Origin: Orbicella franksi
Taxonomy: Eukaryota
Direction of reading: 5' to 3'
NCBI GenBank assembly: GCA_964199315.1
Contig: OZ116699.1
Location: 38,936,001 to 39,000,000, forward strand
Length of the DNA stretch: 64,000 nucleotides
Position numbers and translations under genes: made by a program
Part shown: in pieces, positions 25,012 to 40,384 of the stretch
Numbering within the stretch: the first letter of the stretch is position 1
Layout of the letters: each line of letters begins with the position of its first letter
The notes under the pieces: model-generated
Databases searched by the model: none
What the model was told of the DNA's origin: nothing
What the model saw: only the letters and a program-made list of their open reading frames with translations

Positions 25012-28000
25012 TCACGTGCTAGCACTGTTAGTGACGTATTCGGGTAAGAGGTAAGGATATGGCAAAAATCCCTCGTCCACTCGTTTTTCATTTTCTTTCA
25101 TCATCTGTTCGGTTACTGTCTTCAGCTCGTCGTGAAACCTTTCTATTAATTCTTTTGCTTTCTTGCCCTCGATTTTAGATGAGTAATCGAGTAACTGATC
25201 CAGATGAATTCCTGCCAGGTTAGAACTAAGTTCCGCTATTTCCTGTTGATGAAAATAAGATGGTAGAAAAAGATTTCTAACGGTTAATTTCTGCACAAAA
25301 TCACATAAATAAAGGAAGACAAACACTATTGGAAAAGCTTTCTAGTTAGAACCTCTAACCTTGTGGGAAAGTTACATAAAGTGAATGAAAGTGAAAGAAA
25401 CAGACGAACAAGATATCTGGGAGACAAATATTAAGGCAAGGTCTAGACTAAACTGCTATATCTCCAAAAAAACATATTTGCCTTTTTTATAGCCCCGAGG
25501 CATCTAAATGATATCGAAGAACGCCCGGTGCATTAAATACAGAGAAAAAAATAATAGCTTCCGTCGTGATTGTCTCAGTATTGACTACGGAGAGGGAAGG
25601 AGGGGGGTCATTGACTACTGGACGATCATTGTTCGCTAACAAGTAATGAAATTCAGTTTACGTTTGAAGTTGTCCTTCAGTAGCATTTCGGAATAGCTAA
25701 ATATATTGGTTCAATTGAGGCCTTGAGCTACTGTCATTCGCGTCACCTACACCACTGTTATATCACGCACTATGGAATATTTTCTTTCACTCCCTGATAA
25801 GGCCGTAGAACGGCGAAAGTTTGGAACTAAAATACAGTACCTCAAGGCCTCAATTGAATCAATATATTGAAATTCAGTTTCTTTTGTTATTTAGACAAAT
25901 TGTTCATCAGAACTTTACAAAGTGATTATTTTCTCGGAACAATAACGCGTCGCTCAAGTTCTGATGGAATCTAAAGACTTTTAATAACTGTCGCTAACCC
26001 ATGCAATAAACAGCACATACATACACTTTTCTTCATTTAAATCTTTCAAAAAAATTAAATTACCGCCTTACCAGTGCTACAGCCTTGTTTCCGAACATCA
26101 AATTAGAGAAGGTGGCAGTGCCATTACTGTCAGCAAACAGCCTGTGTGGTGCATTAGGTACAAAGCCTCCATATTCCAAGATAGGGTAAGTAGTGGCAGC
26201 GTGCTGACCAGTGAACGCCCACAGTAGAGTGGTCAGCACCTTGCTTAAAGAGGCTTTCGTTTCTATGGTGGCTGGGAATTTCTTCACCTACAATGAAGCG
26301 ACCGTGTGATCGTTATTTAATATCAATTTAATTTAAATATGATATCAAACGCTGCCCATATTTCTCAGTTTCTTGAGTGTCTGGCTCGAAACCTGTAAGA
26401 AGTTTTTTGATGCAGGGGTCCCGAAACAGATTTCAAAGGATGCGGCGCAAGCATACATAATTATGTCCCACTTTGCTCCTTCAATGATAAGACTTTATTT
26501 ATAATAAATACAATGATAGCTGCTACTTTCTATGCTCGTTCTTACCATGCCCAGTCCCCCAAAGTCTCCCTGTTTACCATCAGCTGACAGTTCATTAACT
26601 AACTCTTGCAACTCGTTATCGGCTACGACCTCTTCGTCATCTTCATAATACCTGCAAAATTCACATAACAGCGATCGTATCTATGAGTACCTTACATTAT
26701 ATGAATGCCACAGTCAATCAATTTATTACACTTCTTCGGGCTAGAATATCATTGCAACAACCCGGAAAGATTTTGCAAAAAATGTTGTATTAGAAACTCT
26801 GTCTGGTATACTCTCCAAGGATCTAGAATATCTGCAAGTTATCAAATAATTGAAAATATGATAACAAGAAATATTAAAATTAACGTAGTTTGACGTTTCG
26901 ATGCGTCAAGCATCATTACTAAGAACAAAAAATTGTATATTGGCATATACAATTTTTCATTCTTGATAATGATGCTTAATGCGTCGAAACGTCAAACTAC
27001 GTTTATTTTAAGATTTTGTCTTAAATGCTTTTAGCAAGCAACTGACCATCCGTTAATATTATATAGAATAGTTAATTATGTAGATATTTAAACAGAACGT
27101 ATCAAGATTGGCCAACTTGGCGAGAAACGTAAGCACAGCCAGATGATATTAACAACAAGTGATACTATTCAAGTGAGTGACTACTGTCTTTGTAGTAACA
27201 CCATTTGGCTCCTTTACCAAGCACGTTGTAAATATCTCATGTAAATGAAGTTAATAATTGTTGGGTGACATACGCATCAATGAAAGCGTCAGCAAACTCG
27301 TTGAGTTTGTGATACAAGAGCTTTCCGTCATCTCGGTAAGGATAGTATGGAAGTTTCTCTGTGTCATCAACTCCTCGTTTCTGTTTGAAGGTAAAATTCA
27401 TACCAGTTAGCAGGAAGCAATAGGCAATATTTCAATTCCCCCCCCCCCCCCCCCACGCCCCCGGGTGAGATGCTAGTCCATAGAAGGGTTAAAACCCAAC
27501 GTAAAATTTTTCGGTACCGCATTTATACCCCTGGGCGGAGGGCGGCCCCGTGAGAGTAAAATGTCTTGTTGAAGAGCAGAACGCAATGACCCCGACCAGG
27601 GCTCGAACCCGAACCGCTCGATCCGGAGTTCAACGCGCTTACCGTTACGCCACAGCGCCTCCATTCTTAGGACAGTACCGGCCTAAATTTTGATAAGTAA
27701 AAACTTTGACAGTTACTAAAGAAGTCAAGTTTTCATATTAATTATATCGCATTATCTTGCTTACACTGCATTCACAATTGCAATGCATAATATGTGCAAC
27801 AACTGGCGTATTGAGAATTAATGAATGAGTTTAAAGTCTAGCGTAAAGGTATAACTCTTGCAATTATATGAATTGTGTTTGTCAATCAAACGGAATTTAA
27901 CCAACCTTTAAGTCTTCCAATAAATCTAGATCTTGGAATGACATTCGCTGGTATTCTTTATTCACAAGTTCAAGAGCGCTAGAATAGTCAATGCTAAGAA

Positions 28001-31000
28001 CCTTGTAAATTGGAGCACTTCTACCTGTTAGAGAAAAATAAATTCGAATCAAATCATTCCTTATCGAGAAGAGATATTACAAAGAGAGGAACAAAGAATG
28101 AAACATTAAAGACATCCTTATTAGTATCGCTCAAAGTTTGGCCATATCCGATTTTGTACATTCTCCCACACCTTCCTCCTATCTTCCTGTTGTGAAGGGC
28201 AAAACAATAATGAGTCACTGCCTCATCTTTGTATTAAATATCACGAAGAAATTTTACAGTCCAAATAGAATAATGTAGAGTGCAAGTGGAAGTTAAACAA
28301 AGTGCTATCAAGGGAAATCTAACTATTCTCTTTCAAATTACTCATTCTCACTTCGTTTTCAAGGCCCCAAATTATTTAATTCTCTTAGCACTGAAATCCA
28401 AAATGCCTCTAGCATTGCTGTTCTCTTAAGTCATCTTTCTTGGTATAGCATAAGTATTTTTTAGCTCTCTTAGTGTGCTTTTTTCGTGCTTTCTTTGCTT
28501 TTGCGCATTCAAGCGTTCAGCTTTGCTTAACTACTTCTTATCCTAAATTATGATTATTTTTTGTGCCGATGACAGAATTTGTATTCTTTCTAAGTCTTAG
28601 GCATCTTTAAGGCAGTCCTTTACATAAGCCTTATTGGCTTCCCTAGGCTTCCTTGCCTTTTTAATTGATGTTATGTAAATATACTTTTAAAGGACAAAAA
28701 AATAAAGCAAACAAAGCAAAAAAATTGCCTGTAAACAAAGCAAAACACCATTACCGAACAACTTGATCTCAAATAACTTGTTTGTTTCCAGAGCTGCTCG
28801 GCAGTGCTGCCGAATGACCTGATAAATTGGATGATACTCCGAGAAGTATTTCTCTACCAAAGTGCAGGGCGCATCCAAGTATAGATGAACTTTGAGTCGC
28901 TTTCTTATTAGGTGTAGAGAATTGAAATCTGCTCTTTGTACGAATGACTTGGCTAGGAACCAGTCCTTCCCGTCTATTGGAGTGTGGACTTTGGAGTCTG
29001 GTGTGGAGTCCATTTGAATAGCGACGGGATTTAGGCGTTTTATTCCAAGCTCTGCTTCGACGACAGCAAAGAAAGCTATCGGCGAAGTCATTTGTAAAAC
29101 AGTGTGGTTGAATTTGACGTCACGTAGTAAAGCCTCTGGCATCTTAACACCGTCAAGTTCAGGATAAATGTTGACATAAATATCGCCATTGTCGATAGCC
29201 TATGAGACAATCAATCAAGCAAGCACGTAAACCATCAGTAATTATATCAGTATATTGATAAATGGATCAATCATTCTCAAAGTATAACTATCATTGGCAA
29301 CTAATCAATCTTACTTTATTGTTTATTCAGTAGACATAATAAAATTGTAGTTGTCCGACGGGCGGTACGTTTCGATGTTGTTGACGTCATTGTCGAAGAA
29401 TTAGCAAACAAAGAACAACTTATGGTTAGATTGATGTAATACTTTTCAGTTGTGCTTAATTCAGCAAAGCAAGCAAACTTAAGACTAAGAAATCACAGCG
29501 CAAGATGACTGAGTTCTGGTTGTGTTCAGTGCATGACTCTCGAGAACGAGGTCGATACATTTGTATCTCATGTACGAGTAATGAAATGTCAATCACTCAC
29601 AGTTCAATTAAACCCCAACAATTAACTGTACAATGTACGACTAGGTTGATATTGATTTGCCTAAGAAATTAGCAAATAAACGGACAAACCTAGAAAGAAG
29701 CAAATAAATAGACAATTGAATCCGATTGTGCTAAATATGATCAGTTTGTATGGTCAAGAAGCCAGGACGGGTGAAAGTGGTGTTTTGTCGAAACAGAACA
29801 GTAACAAGGAACGTAGTTACCAGTAAGGATGACAAGTAGGTTTATTTACCTTACATTATAGAAGTTTAGTTGTTACAAGTGACCGAGCTAGCGCTGTTCA
29901 GCGCTGCCATCAATCACTTGCCTTTTTGTCATTTGTTACTTACAAAACATGGTTAAAACTGTTACCTGCTCAAGAGTTATTCCCTCTTTCTTGGCAAAAG
30001 CCGTTTTAAAAACCTCATCCCAGTCAAAGTGTTTATTCAGTTTGTTTTCAAGAAGAGACTTCCATTCAATACCATTACTCCCTGATGATGAAATCGGTAA
30101 TGGTAGGAACTTTGATAGACCATACAATACACCATTCAAACAGCTTTGGATCTATTCAAGCGGTTTAAATAACTTATACAAGCCAACATATATCTAATCA
30201 AAGTCGCAAAAACATACTCGCATTGACTCAAAGACAGTCCCAGCGGCCAGAAGTCCTCTGACCCCCCCCCCCCCTCCCCTGGCTAGAAGATTGGCCCCTC
30301 TCGCATGCACGTGGCATGGACCACTCCAGCAGGGTGCCATGTCAATGCAGAAGCCTCAAACAAGGTCAAACGACTGAGTAAAATACCCAGAAACACAGTC
30401 AATAGCACACTTATTTAACACTGAAAACACAAAGTCTAGCTGGTTGGGGGTGTTAGTACAAGACACCCTCCCCTCCCCCCTGCTTTTGACAGCTGGCCGC
30501 CAGCAAGTTACCAACAGATAGGCCAGTCATTGGGCCATGTGCCCAGCCTGGCCTTGACGGAGCCCCCCCTGGGTTTAAAGTCGCTGGCTTAGCCTGGATT
30601 CGGGCGAAAACCTAGCGGGCATGTTTTTGCGAATTCGCTCAGATATATTCAGAAGTATTCCACGGTATTTTTTGTCCGTTAATTCGTGGCCATGATGGCC
30701 CCTGATAAATTTTGTCAAAATGCCCGTCGTATGTCCCTGTTTATAGCTGTTACTAAAAGTGTCCTCTGTTGGTTTTTGGTTTCAGTATAGTCGGCTAGAA
30801 ATGGAAACGCCATCATTTCTACTAAAATAGGTACTTATATTCTAGTTTTGACAGTGTCCTTTTTCCATTGTCGGACTCTTAAAATTTTTTCACCATGTTG
30901 ATTTACCTTCTTTATTTGTTACACGCCACAGTTGATATGGATTAACGCCTGCAACCCGCTGATCTGCAAAACAGCGGTCTTTGAAAAAGTTCTCTTCGAT

Positions 31001-34000
31001 GGCTGGCACAAGTCTTAAAGCACTCATGGCACTCCTTTTCTATAACGAAATGTAAAATGAATCATGTTAAAGGTACTGAACGTAAGACTGAACGTAAGAC
31101 TACCTGCATAATACCTCACGCCTCCGCCACATTTTTTAGCGCATTTGGTAAAATACTGCGTTAGTATGGGGCTGTACACGAATTTGTCAGAATTGTCAAA
31201 TGGAACATCACAGTCGATATGAGAGGATGCTTAATAACGATGACAGCTCTGGTTTCAGAGAGGCTTAGAAAAAAGCTATTAAAAATCGGTATATTGTTTG
31301 TAGGACGTTCTTTCCAAAAAAAGACGGCCCCTTGTTATCTTAAATGTTGTTACAATCCTACTGAAAATTCCATCGTTATAGACACTGCAACATCAAATGT
31401 TGAAGATAATGAATTTGTAAATTACCTTAGCAACGTCTGCGAATAATTACTGATTAAATAATGATTAAAAGAAATCGAGTGTATACTGAATTATTATATT
31501 GCTTTAGTTAATGATACCCTGTGTTCTTTGTAGAAAGTCTCAAATACCACGGCAAAATCAATCAATGTTGGCGTTTCATGAAAGCGAGGATCTTTTAGGG
31601 TGAAGTGTGACTCCAGATCTTTGTTAACATCAGCGTTATCTGTCATTTTCATGTACCACTCTATAGTGAAAGGATCTGTGGAAGCACTCTGGACAAAACT
31701 TGCTGCTCCTTTTTTCGACAACGTTGGTACCATCAAGTCTTCTGATCTACTTAAAGAAATCAAAATGAAACATATCCTTTCACGATTGCATGCAGCCCGT
31801 CTAGCTACCTTGGAAAAGTTTTTTAAAAGGCCAGAGAAAATAGCTTTCACCACAACTGAACATTTCATACGTTGTTTTAACATGATGTTTCCACTTGTCA
31901 GCTGACGCATCAAAGTTAGCAGCTTGTTTAGAAACCAATTGCAATGTAATTACTTTACAGTATGAGTAGTTGAAATTTTCACGCTTGTTTAAATAAATAT
32001 CAAGAATCATTCTTTCAGTGGCATGATAAAGACTAGCTTATTTATGTTGGAGCAATTGTGTCAGTGTAATGACTTACTTTGAGTAGCGATTGTCTTTAAA
32101 AGAAGACAAGCGGATAAGTGTTTTCTTTATCTGTCTGCTGAGTTCTCGTTTCACAAGACACTGAGGAGACGAGAAGCGAGGAAGGCTTATCCGACACTTA
32201 AGTTCTGCAAAAATGAAAGGTGAAACAATTCACGGTTTTTGAACCGGAGTGTCAATATTCCTTTTTATTTCGCCTCCAGAAGATGATAAGATATAAATTA
32301 ATACACGATATCATGAAAGAGTTTAATTTAATTAACTACAAGCAGCCCCGGCATTATGAGGTCACTTTAGAAATAATTTTCGAACTTCTCCAAAACAAAA
32401 ATTAAGAACACTAACCCACATGTAGATTACAATGAGTTGGTTCATTGGTTGTTCCCCATTGGTCTCGAGTGTAGGGCAATCATTGAGCAGGACTGAGTAA
32501 ACTCGTTGGGAACGCGAAGGGAATTATGGGAAAGAAGAAGAATAGAGGGAGGCAGAGACTCTTTATTCCTCCACCCCATCACCTATCGTACTCGCACCAG
32601 TACTTCCCTTCCCTACTTCAAAAGACAACTAGGGTCAACACTGTTACATTGTAGCGACCGTAGCATAGACCATAGGTACTTAACATTGAATCTTTGGGGG
32701 TACGAAAGCTGACCAAAAGAGTGTTGAATAATCTTTCAGACAAAAATCCGAAAACGTTTACCATTACTTGTATTAAAGAAAACAAATTGTTTCGGTTCGC
32801 TAAAGGCTTTAAAAGGCCCCCATACGGACCTCTGAGAGATACTAATATTGGAAGATGTCTTGATGACTCCAAATCTAGAGATGATAAGAGTCTTGAACAC
32901 TTTTCATACCCTCCTGCCCAGGTACATTTGGCACACGTTACTTTATCTACCATGCATGGACTGACTTAGAAATACTATGACTGCTACCAGGAACATACAT
33001 ACCATTACATGTTATTCCACCGAAATCATCGGCGCATTGGCATTGATATCCATCAATAAGATTATAGTTTTGTACACAGATTCCCCCATTTTGGCACGGG
33101 TTTGGCTCGCATTTATTTTCTTCTACATTCTTTATCATTGGAACAGTAGACTCGGACGATTCTTTAACGCCGCTACCAGGCACATCTCCACTAACGCCGT
33201 CATATTCTGAGAAAAGCCAAAGGAAAAAAAAGTTTGTGAGGTATCCGTATGCAACATCTTGGTTCATTTTCTTTTAGAGATTGTTCAGAAACATACCTAG
33301 AAGAAGAATATCTTTAGGACCTACTTATGGCTTGCATTCGGCTTGGAGTGATTACAGCTAGTAATTACAGTGTCATAATTAATAGGCCGAATTATTTTGT
33401 TGCATCGATTGATTTGTGACTGCACGGTCCTTACTATGTATGTACGTATGCGTGTATGTATGTGTGTATGAATCTAGTAATTAAAATGGTTATTGTATCC
33501 TTAGATGATTAGATACTTAGCAATCAGGTTCTAGCCTGACTAGTGTGTCAGTACCTATGTACATGTTACTCAGGTATCTCTTTAGCCTTGTCGCCAAGAG
33601 AAAAACTGGAATTGAAATGTAGCTACAAACCCCGTCACCAGTATTGCGTGTCATTCCATTATGATGTAACCAGCTCTCTTATTTTCTACTTAAGATAGTT
33701 TTAATTAAGTGTAGCCTGGTGAAACAGGGCTTTCGGAGGTAAGAGTGACATTTGTCTCGAAGTCTTTCCCAGCCCAAAGCTTTCCGGCTTCTTGGCGCTT
33801 CCTTGCAAGAGAACCACTGCATTGCTATTGCCGGATGTATTTACTATAGCTTGTATTAACGCTAGCTAACAACTTGATCAAGTTTTAAAACGTCCGTTTT
33901 TACCTTTGGAAATATCAGAAATATAAGTTGATATCCTAAGTCGATCAACAGCAGCTGCAGATTTTAAATGCTGTAGATTTTATGAATGTGTTGTATTGTA

Positions 34001-34287
34001 TGTAACTCCGAAGAATTCTGTCATACTTGTCACAAGATACATACTACTTAAAAATCAAGCAAGTTGATCAAACAGTAGTTGCTAGAACGCCGATAATTTC
34101 TGCTCTTCAAATGTTACCCTCAAAACAGTCTGAAAATTGGGAAAAAAACGCTTATAAAGAGCTTTTAAAAGACTTTTAAGTACAATAAGTCTCTAGTCAA
34201 AACGATGCTTTAAAATAAAAACTTACCTGCTTTACTGCTATGACAGAGAACAATTAGAGCCACAAGAACTACGGGTGCCTTCATCAT
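25012..34287 (-). CDS. Gene C: secreted EGF-lipoxygenase fusion (698 aa), probable pseudoenzyme
   Basis: Exons 34287-34227 (signal MMKAPVVLVALIVLCHSSKA), 33206-33003 (EGF), 32204-32078, 31749-31518, 31039-30907, 30081-29966, 29199-28755, 28024-27906, 27380-27274, 26651-26546, 26287-26072, 25242-25012. Total 2097 nt, all GT-AG, no internal stop. LOX motifs: FFKDRCFADQRVAGVNP, WFLAKSFVQRAD, HPIYQVIRQH, KRGVDDTEKLPYYPYRDDG, DNELQ, QHAA, VPNAP, YPYLLPEYVTNSAST. Confidence 0.9.
25700..25868. repeat. Inverted-repeat element in gene C intron
   Basis: aatatattggttcaattgaggccttgag ... ctcaaggcctcaattgaatcaatatatt. Confidence 0.6.
26882..27003. repeat. ~120-bp near-perfect hairpin, possibly Penelope-derived
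   Basis: acgtagtttgacgtttcgatgcgtcaagcatcatta ... taatgatgcttaatgcgtcgaaacgtcaaactacgt. The Penelope origin is inference from the gacgtttcg/cgaaacgtc core. Confidence 0.6.
27405..27662 (-). mobile_element. Diverged SINE (family 1 related) in gene C intron
   Basis: Segments similar to 48261-48551 (gatgctagtccat, gtgagagtaaa, cagggctcgaacccg, ccgctcgatccgga). Confidence 0.7.
30190..30646. mobile_element. ~460-bp MITE, copy 1
   Basis: Ends atatctaatcaaagtcgcaaaaacat ... gcgggcatgtttttgcgaattcgctcagatat. Body is the reverse complement of 42346-42816. Confidence 0.8.
33003..33110 (-). other. EGF-like domain of gene C
   Basis: CEPNPCQNGGICVQNYNLIDGYQCQCADDFGGITC, six cysteines in canonical spacing, in a phase 1-1 exon. 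Confidence 0.93.
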
Positions 34288-34817
34288 GACCGGCAAACCA
34301 CAAGGGCTCTGGAAAAAAAACAGTTACAAAACGAACACAACTTTAACTTAAAGGTTAACACTTCTCATTACAAAATCATTTTATAGAAGTCTATGCCTTG
34401 CAAGTTTAGCTTCTGTCAAATAAAATAATCACTGCTATTCACATAACATCTCATAAAATTACTTCATCACGAATTTGCCACCGATTTTTGAAAATATTTA
34501 CGGCTTTTTGGCCACTTCAGTCGACTGATTATCGAGCAGTGTGATAACGTACCGTAAACACTCCAAAAGGTGGCTAAAATTACGTATTTTCCTGCCGATG
34601 GATGTTCCGACAAGTCGAAGCAGAATTAGTAATCGAGACTGCACTTGATAAACGGAAGTGATCAGTAACTTGTTAATGTTTTATTGGGTCTGTCAACTAT
34701 GCTAAGGTGTTTGATTTTGAACAATAAGGATACCATGAACTTTATGATGCTCTACAGTTAACTCCCAAAACTATGAAAATCAGTAGAATTGTAAACACAG
34801 GAAATATACATCTCGAA

Positions 34818-34975
34818 CAGTGGTAGATCTAGGAAAGGGGTCCAGGGGGCCCGGACCCCCCTTATTTTGGGGCAAAAAGAAGAAGAAATCACAGAAGGAA
34901 GAAAAGCCGGCAGGGCAAACAAAACAACCCCCTCCCCCTCCCCCTCCCTTAGCTCAAGGTCTGGATCCGCCACTG
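34818..34975. mobile_element. MITE upstream of gene C
   Basis: Inverted ends cagtggtagatctag ... ctggatccgccactg with G/C-run interior. Confidence 0.6.
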
Positions 34976-35187
34976 TCAAAGATTTATCGAGTATTACAGA
35001 ATTTGTGTTTGACAGTGTGACGAAATTTGGACGTGACTTTTTTCTTCATACTGTCAGTGTCGGAAAAAGAAAAACAGCGCTAAGAAGTAGTCCTCTTTTA
35101 TTTTCTTAATTTTTAGCTTCCTATTTTTCTGTTGTTTTGTTTTGTTGCTGGTCGAGCGTATTTCTAACAACTCAGAATTATGATGTC

Positions 35188-35449
35188 ATGTTGGTCGCGT
35201 ATGGAAATATATACAAAAAGAGTGAAAAAAGAGTGCGAAAAAAAATGAAAAACTAGAATACAATATAATTGTGAAAAAAGCTAAAAGAATGTAAGTGACA
35301 TGTAAATTACAATGAAAAGAAATATTGTCTAGGCAACTGGTTTGACATTCTTTTTAGCTTTTTTCACACTTATATTGTACTTTAGTTTTAATTTTTTTTC
35401 GCACTCTTTTTGTATATAAGCTTATATATTTCCATCTGCGCAGCAACAT
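35188..35449. repeat. ~260-bp imperfect palindrome
   Basis: Left arm atggaaatatatacaaaaagagtg...gtgaaaaaagctaaaagaatgt mirrors acattcttttagcttttttcac...cactctttttgtatata...tatttccat. Confidence 0.75.
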
Positions 35450-36896
35450 TTCAAGTTATTCGTTAAAGGCTATTGGCTGATGGTCGAAAGCTTATGTTTT
35501 TAAATCTTTTCAACCAGAGAACGTTTTTACTTCTTTTGAAATAGGTGTTATCCTTGTCATAACTCTATTTTTACTAGTATACCATACTATTTAAATATGT
35601 GCCATTTGTCGGTAGAAGGTCCGCATCGCAGAAAACCTTTCCAGAGGTTGTTTTTGTAAAGAAACCTTGAAGTATTGTGTCGCAAAATCTGTTATACGCG
35701 CCGTGCATTCACAGTTGAGTCAATCGGAAGCTAAAGCAAGAATGAATAACCATATTTGACAACCTACCGTGTAAAATAATGCTTTCAGAACTGGACTGTA
35801 TTGAAGTCTGTCCAATTGCCTGACACGTAGCGATTACTTCTTTATTATAGAGTAATAAATATGCAATTAAATAAACTTACTTTACGTTTTTCTGCCACCG
35901 TATAAAAGCTTTTACGTGTTTCTTAAAGCTTTTATCCTTTTAACAGCTTTCAATATTTGTAAACGATTAAACATACTAAGCGGGTTAAATAATATTAAAC
36001 CCGTAAAAATTCAACGTTCGGATATGAGTTAAAATACAAAGAAATTTAATCCTTAGCGAAGTCTGTGATTATTGTGAAACATTGAGTAGCGAAACTACTT
36101 ACCAATAAAGAGATTAGGCAAACACTAACTACAGAGCTGAAAATGTGCATGTACTTCCCACGTTTCACAAAATGTTGGACGCTAAATCACCGTGTTATAT
36201 AGTTTATATCCGTAAATCCTTTACTATTATGTCGCACATCTATAACATGGAAAAATTTCTGATCCCGTCGAGTTTAGCTGTCAGTTCTTTTGGCTAAACA
36301 ATCCCTACAGTTGGCGACAATATTCGAAAATTCTTCTCTTGGCATTGGCCTTTTAGCCAGCAACCGAGAGCAAGAGCAAGAGCAACGAAAATGAAGCAGA
36401 ACAGAGGCGTTGCTAAATTTATTCCAACATGAACGAAAACAGGAATATTGTGACTTTGTTTACATTTTCATTTCTATTAATCCAAAAAGCGAATTTTTCA
36501 TTGACAAATTGAAATATATCAGATGAGGCCTTCTCTCGGATCCAAGATACCGAGTACTTAGGACGAAGTAAGTGAACACTGAAGTTAAGTGGTAATAAAG
36601 GAATATATAAACTAATAATGAAATTACAGAGAGAAATGATCTTCTCTACAATCTAATTCCGTCATTTTGAATGCCTTAACTCGCGCACGCGTAGACTAGT
36701 GTCCTTAGCAAACAGAGACTAGTGCACTTGGCAAAGTGATGAAGGTTGAAAGATGAAACTAAAGAATTATACCAAGAAAGAATAGTTGGGGATCAAAGCC
36801 AAGTAACTGATGTTATCATGCATAAGGCCTGTATCATGCAACATGCATCTTTTGCAAATGACCTTGAACTAATATAAGCAGGTTGTCTGCTGGAAT

Positions 36897-39023
36897 TCAT
36901 CTTATGCATTGCGAATTGAAGTGAAAGTTACTTTTTTCTTTATTTTTGCTTATGGATGACGTAACATCCATGAGCTTAGGAGGCAGTCGAATGGCACTCA
37001 CTCGATTCTGATTAATTTGTTCATTAACTTGAACTAAACAATTTTCTCCTACCTCTCCTACTAAGTATTGTTTTTGTCCAAGAGTGTTCAGTCGTCTCCA
37101 GGAAGGTTTTTTACGAGGGGAGACTAGAAAGGAGTACATTTTTTTTTATCAGGTCCAAAGTCCGCTGCGCAGCTCAGATGGACAGACGCCCCTCAACGAC
37201 AGGGTATCCATACTGAGTCGTTGGCCTAAACACTTCCAGACTCTCTTCAGTGCAAAACGAATTGTCTATGACTCGGCAATTCTCCGAATCTCCCAGCAAC
37301 CAGTAAAAGCGGAACTGGATGAGCCATCCTCTGTTGATGAGACCGTAAAGGCCATCAAGTAACTGAAGAGTGTCAAGGCTGCCGGACTTGACAGAATCCC
37401 ACCAGAGATTAGTAGCTTGTAGGTCAGCATTACACTCCCAACTCCACGAGCTCTTTGCCTGTTGCTGGGATCAGGGTAAACTTCCACAAGACATCCGCGA
37501 CGCAGTCATCATTACATCTCTATAAGAACAAAGGGAAAAGTCGGACTACAGAGGAATCACTCTGCTCTCTATTGCAGGAAAAATCCTAGCAAGGGTTCTT
37601 TTGAACAGAATGGTGTCTTCCATCGCTGTAGCTCTCCCAGAGGGCCAGTGTGGATTTAGAACCAACGGACGCTCTACTGACATAGTGTTTGTCCTCAGAC
37701 AGCTACAAGAAAAGTGCCGAGAGCATAAAAAAGGCCTGTATGTAACGTTTGGCGATCTCACCAAAAGCGTTTGACACGGTGAACAGAAAAGGACTGTGGA
37801 AGATCTTGGAGCGACTCGGCTGTGTCCCCCAAGTTCCTCAGCACAGTCATCCAGCTGCGCGAAGACCAGCATGGTCAAGTCAGGCTCAACACTGACCTCT
37901 TACGCCTTTTACAATCACCAACAGTGTGAAACAGGGTTGCGTCCTGGCACCGACTCTCTTCTCCATCTTCTTCAGCACAATGCTCAAGCAAGCCACTCAA
38001 CACCTTCACGACGAAGACCTCGTCTACATCTGCTACCACCTTGACGGCAGCCTTTTCAAACTCAGGCGACTTCAGGCCCACACGAAGACCATGGAGCAAC
38101 TGATCCGGGACCTCCTCCTCGCCGACGACGCCACACTCGTTGCACACACAGAAAAGCCTTGCAACGCCTAACTTCTTGCTTTGCAGTGTCTGCCGAGCTC
38201 TTTGGTCTCGAAATCACGAAATCACCCTGAAGAATACGGAGGTCCTGCACCTCGGGAAGTGTATGGCCCCCTGCACATCAAAATTGACGAGGACGAGATA
38301 CAGTCGATAAAGAGATCGACAACAGACTGCTGGCCAAGGCAAACAATGCTTTTTGAAGCGTGCAGTGTGTGGAACAACAAGCACCTGAAGAAGGCTACCA
38401 AGATCAGTGTGTACAGAGCCATCGTGCTTTAATGTATGGCTCTGAGTCGTGGGTCACCTATCGTAGCCACCTGCGACTCCTCGAGCGCTTCCATCAGCGC
38501 TGTCTCGGCACCATTCTCAATATCCACTGGAATGACTTCGTCACCAATGTCGAATTCCTCGAACAAGCGGAGCTCTCCAGCATCGAGGCCATGCTGCTGA
38601 AGTCACAGCTACGTTAGGAAGGACATATCTCCAGGATGGAAGACCACCGCCTGCCAAAGATCACTACAGGCCAGCGCGACGGAGGGACTCCAAAGAAGCG
38701 CTTCAAAGACACCTTGAAGAAAACTCTTGGTGCCTGCCACCTTGACCACAGCCAGTGGTCTATCCTTACAGCAGACCGCGACACTTGGCGTCACACCATC
38801 CACCAAGCTGTCTCCTCGTTCGAAGCCACCCGTAAGGCAAACATTGCGGAGAAAAGACGCTGGAGAAAGAACCGCGAAGCTGCAGCACCAAACCTTGATC
38901 CATCTTTCATCTGCAGCCGCTGCAACCGGGCCTGCCGGTCACGCATTAGCCTAACCAGCCTCGAGAGCGCCTGTAGTCGACGTGGACCACCCCCTTCATG
39001 AACTTTGCTCGTGAAGCCAAGCC

Positions 39024-39054
<31 letters not shown>

Positions 39055-39229
39055 CGATATTCACAGAAGTGATGACGTAAGTCCGATGTAAATCGCCCAG
39101 TTTATACGAATCGTAAACTTTCACCTCATTACTGGCGATGTATACTGAACTGCAATGTATTAGCACCTTCTTTTCTACTTCAGTGGAAATCATGTGCGTT
39201 CTACCTAACTGAAGTTTTATTACATTCAT
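36897..39229 (-). pseudogene. Unidentified coding remnant split by the RTE insertion
   Basis: ORF halves at 39229-39060 and 37090-36897 rejoin in frame across the imperfect target duplication (...VITSVN|TLGQKQYLVGEVGENCLVQVNEQINQNRVSAIRLPPK). Confidence 0.45.
37091..39056 (+). mobile_element. 5'-truncated, decayed RTE-clade LINE
   Basis: Reverse transcriptase fragments across frameshifts (KAAGLDRIP, QCGFRTNG, VKQGCVLAPTLF, RDLLLADD, YGSESWVTYRSHLRLLERFHQRCL, C-terminal CSRCNRACRSRISL), (GAT)n 3' tail, flanks gtgttca/atattca. Confidence 0.9.
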
Positions 39230-40384
39230 TCTTCCATTGAATTGTGGTCATATGAATTACTTTTTATTGCATTCTTAGCAGAATCATTCCGTTAAACCGA
39301 TTTTCCCGTTGCCTCTAGTTCGTGCCAGCGGATTTATTCCTGACATCTTCTATTACACAAAAAGTTGAATCCCATTAATTTCTTAATTTTTCAAAAGTTA
39401 CGTAAGGATTGAGAGAAAAAAGGTGTTTACTTTTCTTATTTTGCGAGACGGTTACCGTGATTAAGGCTATGAAGATAGTACTATTTTGGAATAAGTTGTT
39501 TTTTTAATTTGCATTGTTAGCAAGATATTTTTTCACTAAAGGTCATCTTAGATAAACAGTTCTCGTAATGGTGTGCAGCCAAGCGCACCCTTTTGTCATC
39601 AAGGTGGGAAGCATTTATATACTTAAAGGTAATCATCTACAACGACTTTGAGTCATCGCTGAACCGGATAAACTTTTCTCCATTTGAAGTCTCCATGGAA
39701 ACGATATAACAAACGGCTCATGTGACAACCTTGTTCGCGTCGCGATTAGTGTCTTGTTGGTTGACGCTTTCCTTTTTAGACATAATTATACATTTATAAC
39801 CATAAGGAAAACAGATTTGCCTCTCCTCGCATGTCCAGTTTCCAATAATATCAGTGATAATGCATTGTTCACCTTCACTGACCAAGTCTCATTCGCAGAC
39901 TCTTGGCAAACCATTGATTACTCACTGACCCAAGGATCACTTTAATCTTAAAAACTGTAAAAGTAATGGACCCTTTCAGTGACGTATTTCATCAGAATTA
40001 TTTAACTATATCTTATTAGCTCATTTTCGATCTAACAGATCAAAAATATTTTCAAGATCTTAGAAGCCAGGAGACTATTTTATCAATACTATAGCTGTAA
40101 TTATTCGTTCAGTGTATACGGGGCTTGATTCGTTCGAAGAGTTTGAAATACCAGAAAATGTTGACTTTGAATAAAAATGACAGGAATTTAGTGTAATTAT
40201 GTCATGTGTTGTTATTTTCTATGGAGGCTACCTGTAGCAGGTTGTTTTGGCACCCAATTGGGTACTGATAGACCTTGTTGTTTGCCTAAGAGGTTCGCTG
40301 CAGCTAAAACTTTATTTTGACTCGGAAATATGTTTTTTTTAGAGAAAATTTTCTGATAAGATAACAGGACACCAAGATTGAATT

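Follow-up and report, generated by a model that had tools for sequence, protein, structure and literature searches.

A coral gene joins one EGF module to a PLAT-less lipoxygenase fold with substituted iron ligands in a predicted secreted protein

Analysis of a 64,000-nucleotide stretch of the Orbicella franksi genome (GenBank assembly GCA_964199315.1, contig OZ116699.1, positions 38,936,001 to 39,000,000 of the forward strand; hereafter the window) identified an expressed gene, here called EGF-LOX, that joins a hydrophobic leader, an acidic linker and one EGF module to the fold of a lipoxygenase (LOX). The product is almost certainly a secreted EGF and LOX-fold protein of a lineage without the PLAT domain. 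Animal lipoxygenases are regarded as cytosolic, Ca- and membrane-targeted PLAT enzymes, and work on coral oxylipins assumes so. Taken as a whole, we consider it likely that EGF-LOX is an extracellular protein in which an inserted EGF module precedes a PLAT-less LOX fold that has lost iron ligands, and that it acts in a non-canonical manner as a lipid binder or matrix component.

The gene model was rebuilt from the window by enumerating frame-compatible GT/AG pairs, and the splice boundaries were then fixed against a transcript contig. Homology searches with the largest exon and then with the full-length sequence led to P0156, a protein called on a 2847-nucleotide Logan contig (L001) whose 13 blocks of alignment with the window are collinear and 99-100% identical, starting with a 5' block at 34631..34553 and continuing at 34309..34227 with the acceptor at 34308. 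The coding sequence (34287..25012, minus strand) comprises 12 coding exons and 2094 nucleotides, corresponding to 697 residues and a stop; every intron is GT-AG, and alignment of the contig adds one non-coding 5' exon for a total of 13. The open reading frame (ORF) of L001 is identical to the model except for S122T. The frame of 12 exons and 698 codons, and the opening of exon 3, are therefore as read in the original prediction, which had been made from the window sequence without database searches; only the non-coding exon is new. The features of the gene are as follows (UTR, untranslated region).

34553..34631, minus strand: non-coding 5' UTR exon, from the L001 alignment and the RNA joint to 34308
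34227..34308, minus strand: exon 1, end of the 5' UTR, ATG at 34287 and a 20-residue hydrophobic leader MMKAPVVLVALIVLCHSSKA; the coding part (34287..34227) ends in phase 1 and closes at a GTAAGT donor
33003..33206, minus strand: exon 2 (phase 1-1), in which codons 21-52 encode the acidic Ser-Gly linker, followed by one EGF module (C53..C87, 33111..33007); flanked by ..ttctcag before and gtatgt after the exon
32078..32204, minus strand: exon 3, start of the LOX-fold module (ELKC92-RISLPR..C104), opening with ELKCRISLPRF
31746..31518, 31039..30907 and 30081..29966, minus strand: exons 4-6, spanning 29966..31746, N-terminal helical part of the LOX fold, containing the most conserved block of the clade (..SFVQSASTDPFTIEWYMKM..)
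28755..29199, minus strand: exon 7, catalytic-core helices with K390 (28902..28900), H395 (28887..28885), C402 and C423
28024..27906, 27380..27274 and 26651..26546, minus strand: exons 8-10, spanning 26546..28024
26072..26287, minus strand: exon 11, with H578 (26203..26201) and T582 (26191..26189)
24358..25242, minus strand: exon 12, end of the LOX fold, T697 (25017..25015), stop (25014..25012) and about 650 nucleotides of 3' UTR

Transcript data agree with this model. Between 0.17 and 0.29 of the sampled words of the 9.3-kb stretch are held by 14 RNA runs, which is approximately the exon share. Mapped over 28740-34700, raw reads of the poly-A RNA run X24, together with the contigs of two more RNA runs, showed the joints 34553>34308 (8 raw X24 reads and one X1 contig), 34227>33206, 33003>32204, 32078>31746, 31518>31039, 30906>30080 and 29965>29198. 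The order of signal exon, EGF exon and first LOX exon that had been predicted is thus present in RNA, and L001 spans the whole series. Among the reads and contigs mapped on this interval, no competing joint from the gene to another upstream exon was found, and no PLAT-like ORFs were found upstream of the gene at 34300-42000. The 5' UTR of L001 contains two stops in frame upstream of the ATG, which leaves no place in this mRNA for a further N-terminal coding exon, whether PLAT or other; the one exon spliced upstream is the non-coding one at 34631..34553. The locus is a real, expressed, single-copy gene, and the signal, EGF and LOX parts are the chain of one mRNA. A gene-model artefact that borrowed its signal and EGF exons from a separate gene, or a decaying pseudogene, was also considered. 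Nothing was found in its favour beyond the weak Pfam scores of single exons, which could at first be taken for decay. We give this explanation next to no credence, because a single contig with an unbroken ORF covers every exon, the junctions are read in independent runs, the same architecture occurs in more than 10 species, and the ratio of nonsynonymous to synonymous substitution rates (dN/dS) is about 0.07. In most runs the RNA depth over 30133-30730, within intron 5, greatly exceeds that of the exons, and mismatches and loose ends are frequent there; the most likely source is a dispersed transcribed repeat that does not belong to the gene.

Pfam analysis of the whole protein returned Lipoxygenase PF00305 at 121 bits (cut-off 23.6; residues 172-625 of P0156) and EGF PF00008 at 29 bits (E 1.3e-6; cut-off 21.5), the latter rising to 33.8 bits (E 4.1e-8) when exon 2 was searched alone. 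The EGF module shows a six-cysteine pattern (C53, C58, C64, C76, C78 and C87), and its sequence matches in the PDB are EGF modules of EDIL3, Notch1 and DLK1. The whole protein gave no match to PLAT (PF01477) at E <= 0.01, and Pfam found no catalase-related allene oxide synthase (AOS) domain, the 697 residues carrying only EGF and Lipoxygenase. An AlphaFold2 model was built from a 22-sequence alignment (mean predicted local distance difference test score 77.8, predicted template modelling (TM) score 0.80). In P0156 numbering, it has a small EGF at residues 56-92 after a disordered linker, and then a LOX core, with helices at 105-121, 145-155, 159-184, 195-209 and beyond between the EGF and the core. 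This model contains no beta-sandwich, since only two short EGF strands and helices precede the core. A single EGF module in a phase 1-1 exon and the lack of PLAT, both anticipated earlier, are therefore seen in the domain search and, for PLAT, also in the model. A Foldseek search against the PDB matched lipoxygenases only, with probability 1.00 and E 1e-27 for 8R-LOX, CspLOX2 and 5-LOX. The target-normalised TM score was highest for the PLAT-less Cyanothece CspLOX2 (0.81-0.83) and was 0.69 for 8R-LOX and 5-LOX, which bear PLAT, a difference to be expected if PLAT alone stayed unmatched. An ESM Atlas look-up returned only generic LOX clusters (score 0.76) and was uninformative.

Read by eye, the leader has n, h and c regions with S-K-A at positions -3 to -1 and would be cleaved after Ala20. 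Because this leader is accompanied by the EGF module, by conserved cysteine pairs and by extracellular modules on related proteins, we infer that the protein enters the secretory pathway. Acidic Ser-Gly motifs lie just after the predicted cleavage site in most hexacoral orthologues, with EEGSGSGE, DDGSGSGE, DDSFSGE and EYDGVSGD..PGSG in stony coral linkers and EEGSGTD in Exaiptasia; the linker of Nematostella is much longer and contains only EAEGSS. We take these motifs to resemble a glycosaminoglycan-attachment site, as a lead only, and through its acidic Gly-Ser-Gly motif the protein may be a part-time proteoglycan.

Orthologues were collected by a search with the Exaiptasia relative and by cluster look-ups in public databases. 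Proteins of the same length and N-terminal plan were found in Actiniaria (Exaiptasia, Actinostola, Actinia and Nematostella), in Scleractinia (Porites, Oculina patagonica and several metatranscriptome sequences) and in Octocorallia (Dendronephthya and Paramuricea). A Desmophyllum entry (P0173, 562 residues) is a truncated gene model without the N-terminal part. Pfam confirmed the EGF in the Exaiptasia, Nematostella and Paramuricea proteins and detected no AOS domain in any of the EGF-clade orthologues checked. The window protein is approximately 60% identical to those of sea anemones and 42-46% identical to those of octocorals. Within the Orbicella franksi genome the gene is present in a single copy, and at least 10 further LOX-like loci on contigs C1, C2, C6, C8, C9, C13 and C14 include none of the EGF type. 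Several of the LOX-like loci stand in tandem (for example at C2:6.53-6.56 Mb and C6:30.54-30.57 Mb).

The next-nearest proteins are cnidarian LOX homologues of 626-748 residues with 26-32% identity, from Acropora, Stylophora, Montipora, Nematostella, Oculina, the jellyfish Sanderia and Rhopilema, and Hydra. Neither PLAT nor EGF was found in these EGF-less homologues. Most of them begin with a hydrophobic leader that runs directly into C-x-(V/I)SLPQ-x5-C; the Sanderia model differs in placing a long non-hydrophobic N-terminal stretch ahead of this motif. Additional domains were found in other members of the clade, including FN2 inside the LOX domain (Montipora, P0015), TSP1 together with FN2 in a 912-residue protein (P0032) and a sub-threshold EMI in Nematostella P0009/P0201. 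These compositions indicate that extracellular domains have been shuffled repeatedly onto a cnidarian secreted LOX scaffold.

A maximum likelihood tree of 70 sequences was computed by a quick method, with bacterial LOXs and vertebrate and tunicate PLAT-type LOXs as outgroups and branch support from the Shimodaira-Hasegawa-like approximate likelihood ratio test (SH-aLRT). The EGF clade received a support of 100, and its internal order, with octocorals beside a pair of sea anemones and stony corals, mirrors the species tree. A branch with SH-aLRT 99 unites the EGF clade with the EGF-less secreted cnidarian group, apart from the bacterial and PLAT-type LOXs. Four cysteines, C92, C104, C402 and C423 (the first two being C95 and C107 in P0156 numbering), are invariant in 30/30 members of this joint clade and essentially absent elsewhere; bacterial and PLAT-type LOXs lack C92 and C104. 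They are predicted to form two disulfides, which would fit a protein of the secretory pathway.

The history of the EGF exon was examined in an EGF-less paralogue on contig C14. Its signal exon ends in phase 1 (..AACTCAG/GTATGA, the slash marking the exon boundary), and about 2.9 kb downstream lies the exon G/GG ATA TAC GGA GAC GAA TGC.., which encodes GIYGDEC-PVELSQ. The intron between them equals, in place and phase, both introns that flank the EGF exon of the window gene. Because the EGF exon is of phase 1-1 and a phase-1 intron stands at the equivalent place in the paralogue, the EGF exon was very likely inserted into a pre-existing phase-1 intron; the parent gene would already have been secreted and PLAT-less, since other clade members bear a signal peptide and no PLAT. 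The original prediction had instead let EGF replace PLAT through exon shuffling. On that reading, a single shuffling event would have removed PLAT from a canonical cytosolic enzyme of PLAT and catalytic domains and supplied both the signal peptide and the EGF. This has some appeal, in that the EGF exon has phase 1-1 and the EGF sits exactly where canonical LOXs carry PLAT, 8 residues before the SLPR (SLP(R/Q)) that starts the catalytic domain. However, the nearest relatives have a signal peptide and neither PLAT nor EGF, they group with the EGF clade at SH-aLRT 99 and have the four clade-specific cysteines in common with it, and the same genome holds a paralogue with an empty phase-1 intron at the insertion point. 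A one-step replacement is therefore very improbable. Under insertion into a secreted parent, the EGF most likely displaced no PLAT in that step; the exon shuffling itself, as proposed earlier, agrees with the paralogue intron, and what falls is the exchange for PLAT. The architecture is also not confined to this gene and recurs across sea anemones, stony corals and octocorals in public databases.

A bacterial origin was also considered on account of the SLPQ motif, which is common to bacterial LOXs. It was rejected because LOXs generally begin their catalytic domain with an LP(Q/R/V)D-type motif and because the tree does not nest the cnidarian clade in bacterial sequences. With the Stylophora paralogue as query, cyanobacterial LOXs score above fish LOXs in a word- and length-filtered search. 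Cyanobacterial gene transfer is not claimed, as the search was filtered and the window protein matches 8R-LOX and CspLOX2 with equal scores.

The metal site was then compared by alignment to the coral 8R-LOX (PDB 3fg3) and to the 70-sequence set (14 of the EGF clade and 56 others), with the following residues at the five ligand positions.

Ligand 1 (His): K390 in the window protein; EGF clade Lys 14/14; others His 56/56
Ligand 2 (His): H395 in the window protein; EGF clade His 11, Asn in 3 octocorals; others His 56/56
Ligand 3 (His): H578 in the window protein; EGF clade His 14/14; others His 55/56 (one Arg)
Ligand 4 (Asn): T582 in the window protein; EGF clade Thr 14/14; others Asn 49/56
C-terminus (Ile): T697 in the window protein; EGF clade Thr 14/14; ligand-retaining paralogues most commonly Thr (8/16)

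The window protein lacks the full ligand set of a competent LOX (His, His, His, Asn or His/Ser, and a C-terminal carboxylate), the members of the EGF clade do not all share any one metal site, and no RNA read variants were found at the K390 and H395 codons. With two iron-ligand positions substituted throughout the clade, the plain label of lipoxygenase given originally was an overstatement. At the same time, the LOX domain shows a dN/dS of 0.055-0.079 by the Nei-Gojobori method among four scleractinian orthologues, a rough value since dS is saturated above 1.2, and in the same comparison the leader and linker show 0.22-0.65. These ratios point to strong purifying selection on the LOX domain.

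On this evidence the protein probably, although by no means securely, has no canonical dioxygenase activity. The opposite reading is an active secreted fatty-acid dioxygenase with an unusual metal centre, in which Lys390, His395, His578 and the carboxylate of the C-terminus would be ligands and Thr582 would lie in the second shell. It would explain the strong purifying selection on the LOX core and the conservation in hexacorals of His395, His578 and the C-terminal ..LPYPYxLPxxxTNSxST motif. Additionally, a C-terminus other than Ile is normal for the clade, the ligand-retaining paralogues ending in Thr, Ser or Val, and either His or Ser is tolerated in place of the Asn in mammalian LOXs (PMC5793058). 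However, the first His is invariant in 56/56 non-EGF sequences and is Lys in 14/14 of the EGF clade, the second His is also lost in three of four octocoral orthologues, so that no metal site is retained clade-wide, and a bulky Phe has been reported at the Coffa position of an Acropora sequence (PMC5793058). We therefore regard an active enzyme as unlikely.

We consider that EGF-LOX is most likely an extracellular LOX-fold pseudoenzyme or lipid binder. In the history that we propose, the anthozoan stem lineage would have gained a phase 1-1 EGF exon within the phase-1 intron that separated the signal-peptide exon from the first LOX exon, and on the same branch the first iron-ligand His would have changed to Lys and the ligand Asn to Thr. 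The protein would have been kept under strong purifying selection since the gain of the EGF, its LOX lipid channel being used to bind and not to oxygenate. Outside the cell it may serve as a LOX-fold binder of lipids or oxylipins, or as a matrix component, positioned by the EGF module and perhaps further by a glycosaminoglycan chain on the acidic Ser-Gly motif. A more specific version, which we advance tentatively and with somewhat less than even confidence, is that Anthozoa have kept, probably from before the split of hexacorals and octocorals, a matrix-tethered extracellular LOX-fold binder or sensor of lipids or oxylipins without canonical iron catalysis.

Several points weigh against this interpretation. 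Lys can in principle ligate a metal, and hexacorals keep three of five metal elements, namely His395, His578 and a free C-terminus within the conserved C-terminal motif. The tree was made by a quick method and without cnidarian PLAT-type LOXs among its outgroups, and the saturation of dS makes the dN/dS values rough. The lipid-binder role is drawn from the fold alone, and the case for secretion consists of sequence features read by eye together with circumstantial evidence.

The window protein was also compared with known systems. The EGF-less cnidarian homologues, such as Stylophora XP_022779753.1, Acropora XP_029186042.2, Nematostella XP_048582836.1 and Hydra XP_047133050.1, resemble it in having a leader, no PLAT, the C-x-(V/I)SLPx..C start, the four cysteines, a C-terminal Thr, Ser or Val and a phase-1 intron after the signal exon, and belong to the same clade. 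They differ from it in lacking an EGF and in retaining the canonical ligands His, His, His and Asn, at 26-32% identity. The best PDB match is the Plexaura homomalla 8R-LOX of AOS-LOX (2FNQ, 3FG1 and 3FG3; E 3e-42, about 24% identity), which has the same catalytic fold, but is cytosolic and has a Ca-binding PLAT/C2-like domain, the full iron-ligand set and a fused catalase-like AOS domain. In AOS-LOX (about 1066 residues, 3dy5), the window protein matches only the LOX part, residues 636-1064. CspLOX2 and the secreted Pseudomonas aeruginosa LOX (PA-LOX) have an N-terminal helical extension instead of PLAT, and PA-LOX has a signal peptide and binds a phospholipid. These PLAT-less bacterial LOXs (CspLOX2 5MED; PA-LOX 4G32 and 5IR4) share the lack of PLAT with the window protein, but have no EGF, carry canonical iron ligands and form a separate group in the tree.

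A partial Acropora millepora LOX, c006594, was previously noted in the stony-coral LOX clade as an outlier, carrying His>Lys, Asn>Thr and a Phe at the Coffa position (Lohelaid & Samel 2018, PMC5793058). Its pair of ligand changes is identical to that of the window protein, and from these reported features c006594 is very probably the Acropora orthologue of EGF-LOX. The text of that paper mentions no signal peptide, EGF or PLAT; because only the part from the WLLAK motif to the C-terminus was analysed, the signal peptide and EGF would have gone unseen. In the open-access literature searched, we found no description of an EGF-LOX architecture, a secreted cnidarian LOX or a LOX in calicoblasts or nematocysts, and the statement in the original prediction that no signal-EGF-LOX had been characterised agrees with this. 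Likewise, nothing was found there on Anthozoa-wide conservation, on a secreted PLAT-less cnidarian clade or on a link between EGF gain and ligand loss. Sequences of EGF-LOX are thus already public, and the odd ligands of one partial orthologue were recorded in 2018; relative to the literature searched, the architecture and the clade are newly described. Finally, eight lipoxygenases have been reported in the skeletal matrix of Desmophyllum (2026 preprint, 10.64898/2026.03.24.713908); the orthologue of EGF-LOX in this coral is KAJ7393685.1.

These results suggest that Cnidaria hold a clade of secretory-pathway, PLAT-less LOX homologues that have repeatedly gained EGF, FN2 and TSP1, and that one Anthozoa-wide branch of it carries a rewired metal site under strong constraint. 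If the proposed interpretation is true, a secreted pseudoenzyme of the lipoxygenase family would be described in animals for the first time with EGF-LOX, whose site of action would be the mucus, mesoglea or calcifying space. The gene offers a clean, dated case of phase-compatible exon insertion coupled with the loss of catalytic residues. It also provides a candidate through which the extracellular handling of lipids by corals can be tested, a question that the skeletal-matrix preprint makes concrete. The orthologues carry automatic names such as 'allene oxide synthase-lipoxygenase-like' or '5-lipoxygenase-like', and the former is a misnomer, because the group has no AOS domain, no PLAT and no full set of iron ligands. 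Such names can mislead omics studies into inferring eicosanoid synthesis. Omics papers that read AOS-LOX names may count EGF-LOX, a possible case being the planula-enriched XP_027058640.1 (PMC12960093).

Other open frames of the window were also inspected. A multi-exon gene at 8202-16728 (minus strand), 8 kb downstream of the LOX gene and on the same strand, is built of strongly acidic modules that contain long (Glu-Ser-Gly)n tracts and each end in a KR-x-x-IP-like sequence, and it looks like a secreted acidic protein of skeletal-matrix type. At 49126-50417 (minus strand), acidic Ser/Asp/Glu-rich open frames (..SGDGEFVEKSKNEQ.., ..DSSGEAERPDDSSEA..) have the appearance of a second acidic secreted-protein gene, so that the LOX gene may be one of several clustered genes for the extracellular matrix. 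A Cys-rich open frame at 53292-53780 (minus strand; ..CVGKCKLAGYSYAGLQYGYLCFCGDKFGKYG..DCDSLCFGD..) is WSC/carbohydrate-binding-like by eye, and a low-complexity open frame rich in Pro, Gln, Tyr and Ala at 56898-57979 (minus strand; ..PQQGAYGQQYPYMGQMPSP..) possibly encodes a matrix-type protein. Reverse-transcriptase-like open frames at about 37000-39000 on both strands (..RGITLLSIAGKILARVLLNR..) mark a retroelement fragment approximately 3 kb upstream of the LOX gene; nothing else in the intergenic region upstream looks coding. A short repeat with a common pseudo-ORF, probably resembling a short interspersed nuclear element or a miniature inverted-repeat transposable element, occurs in three copies, at 15876-16163, 27473-27693 (within intron 8 of the LOX gene) and 48334-48573. 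At 54449-54644, 196 consecutive N represent an assembly gap or a masked stretch.

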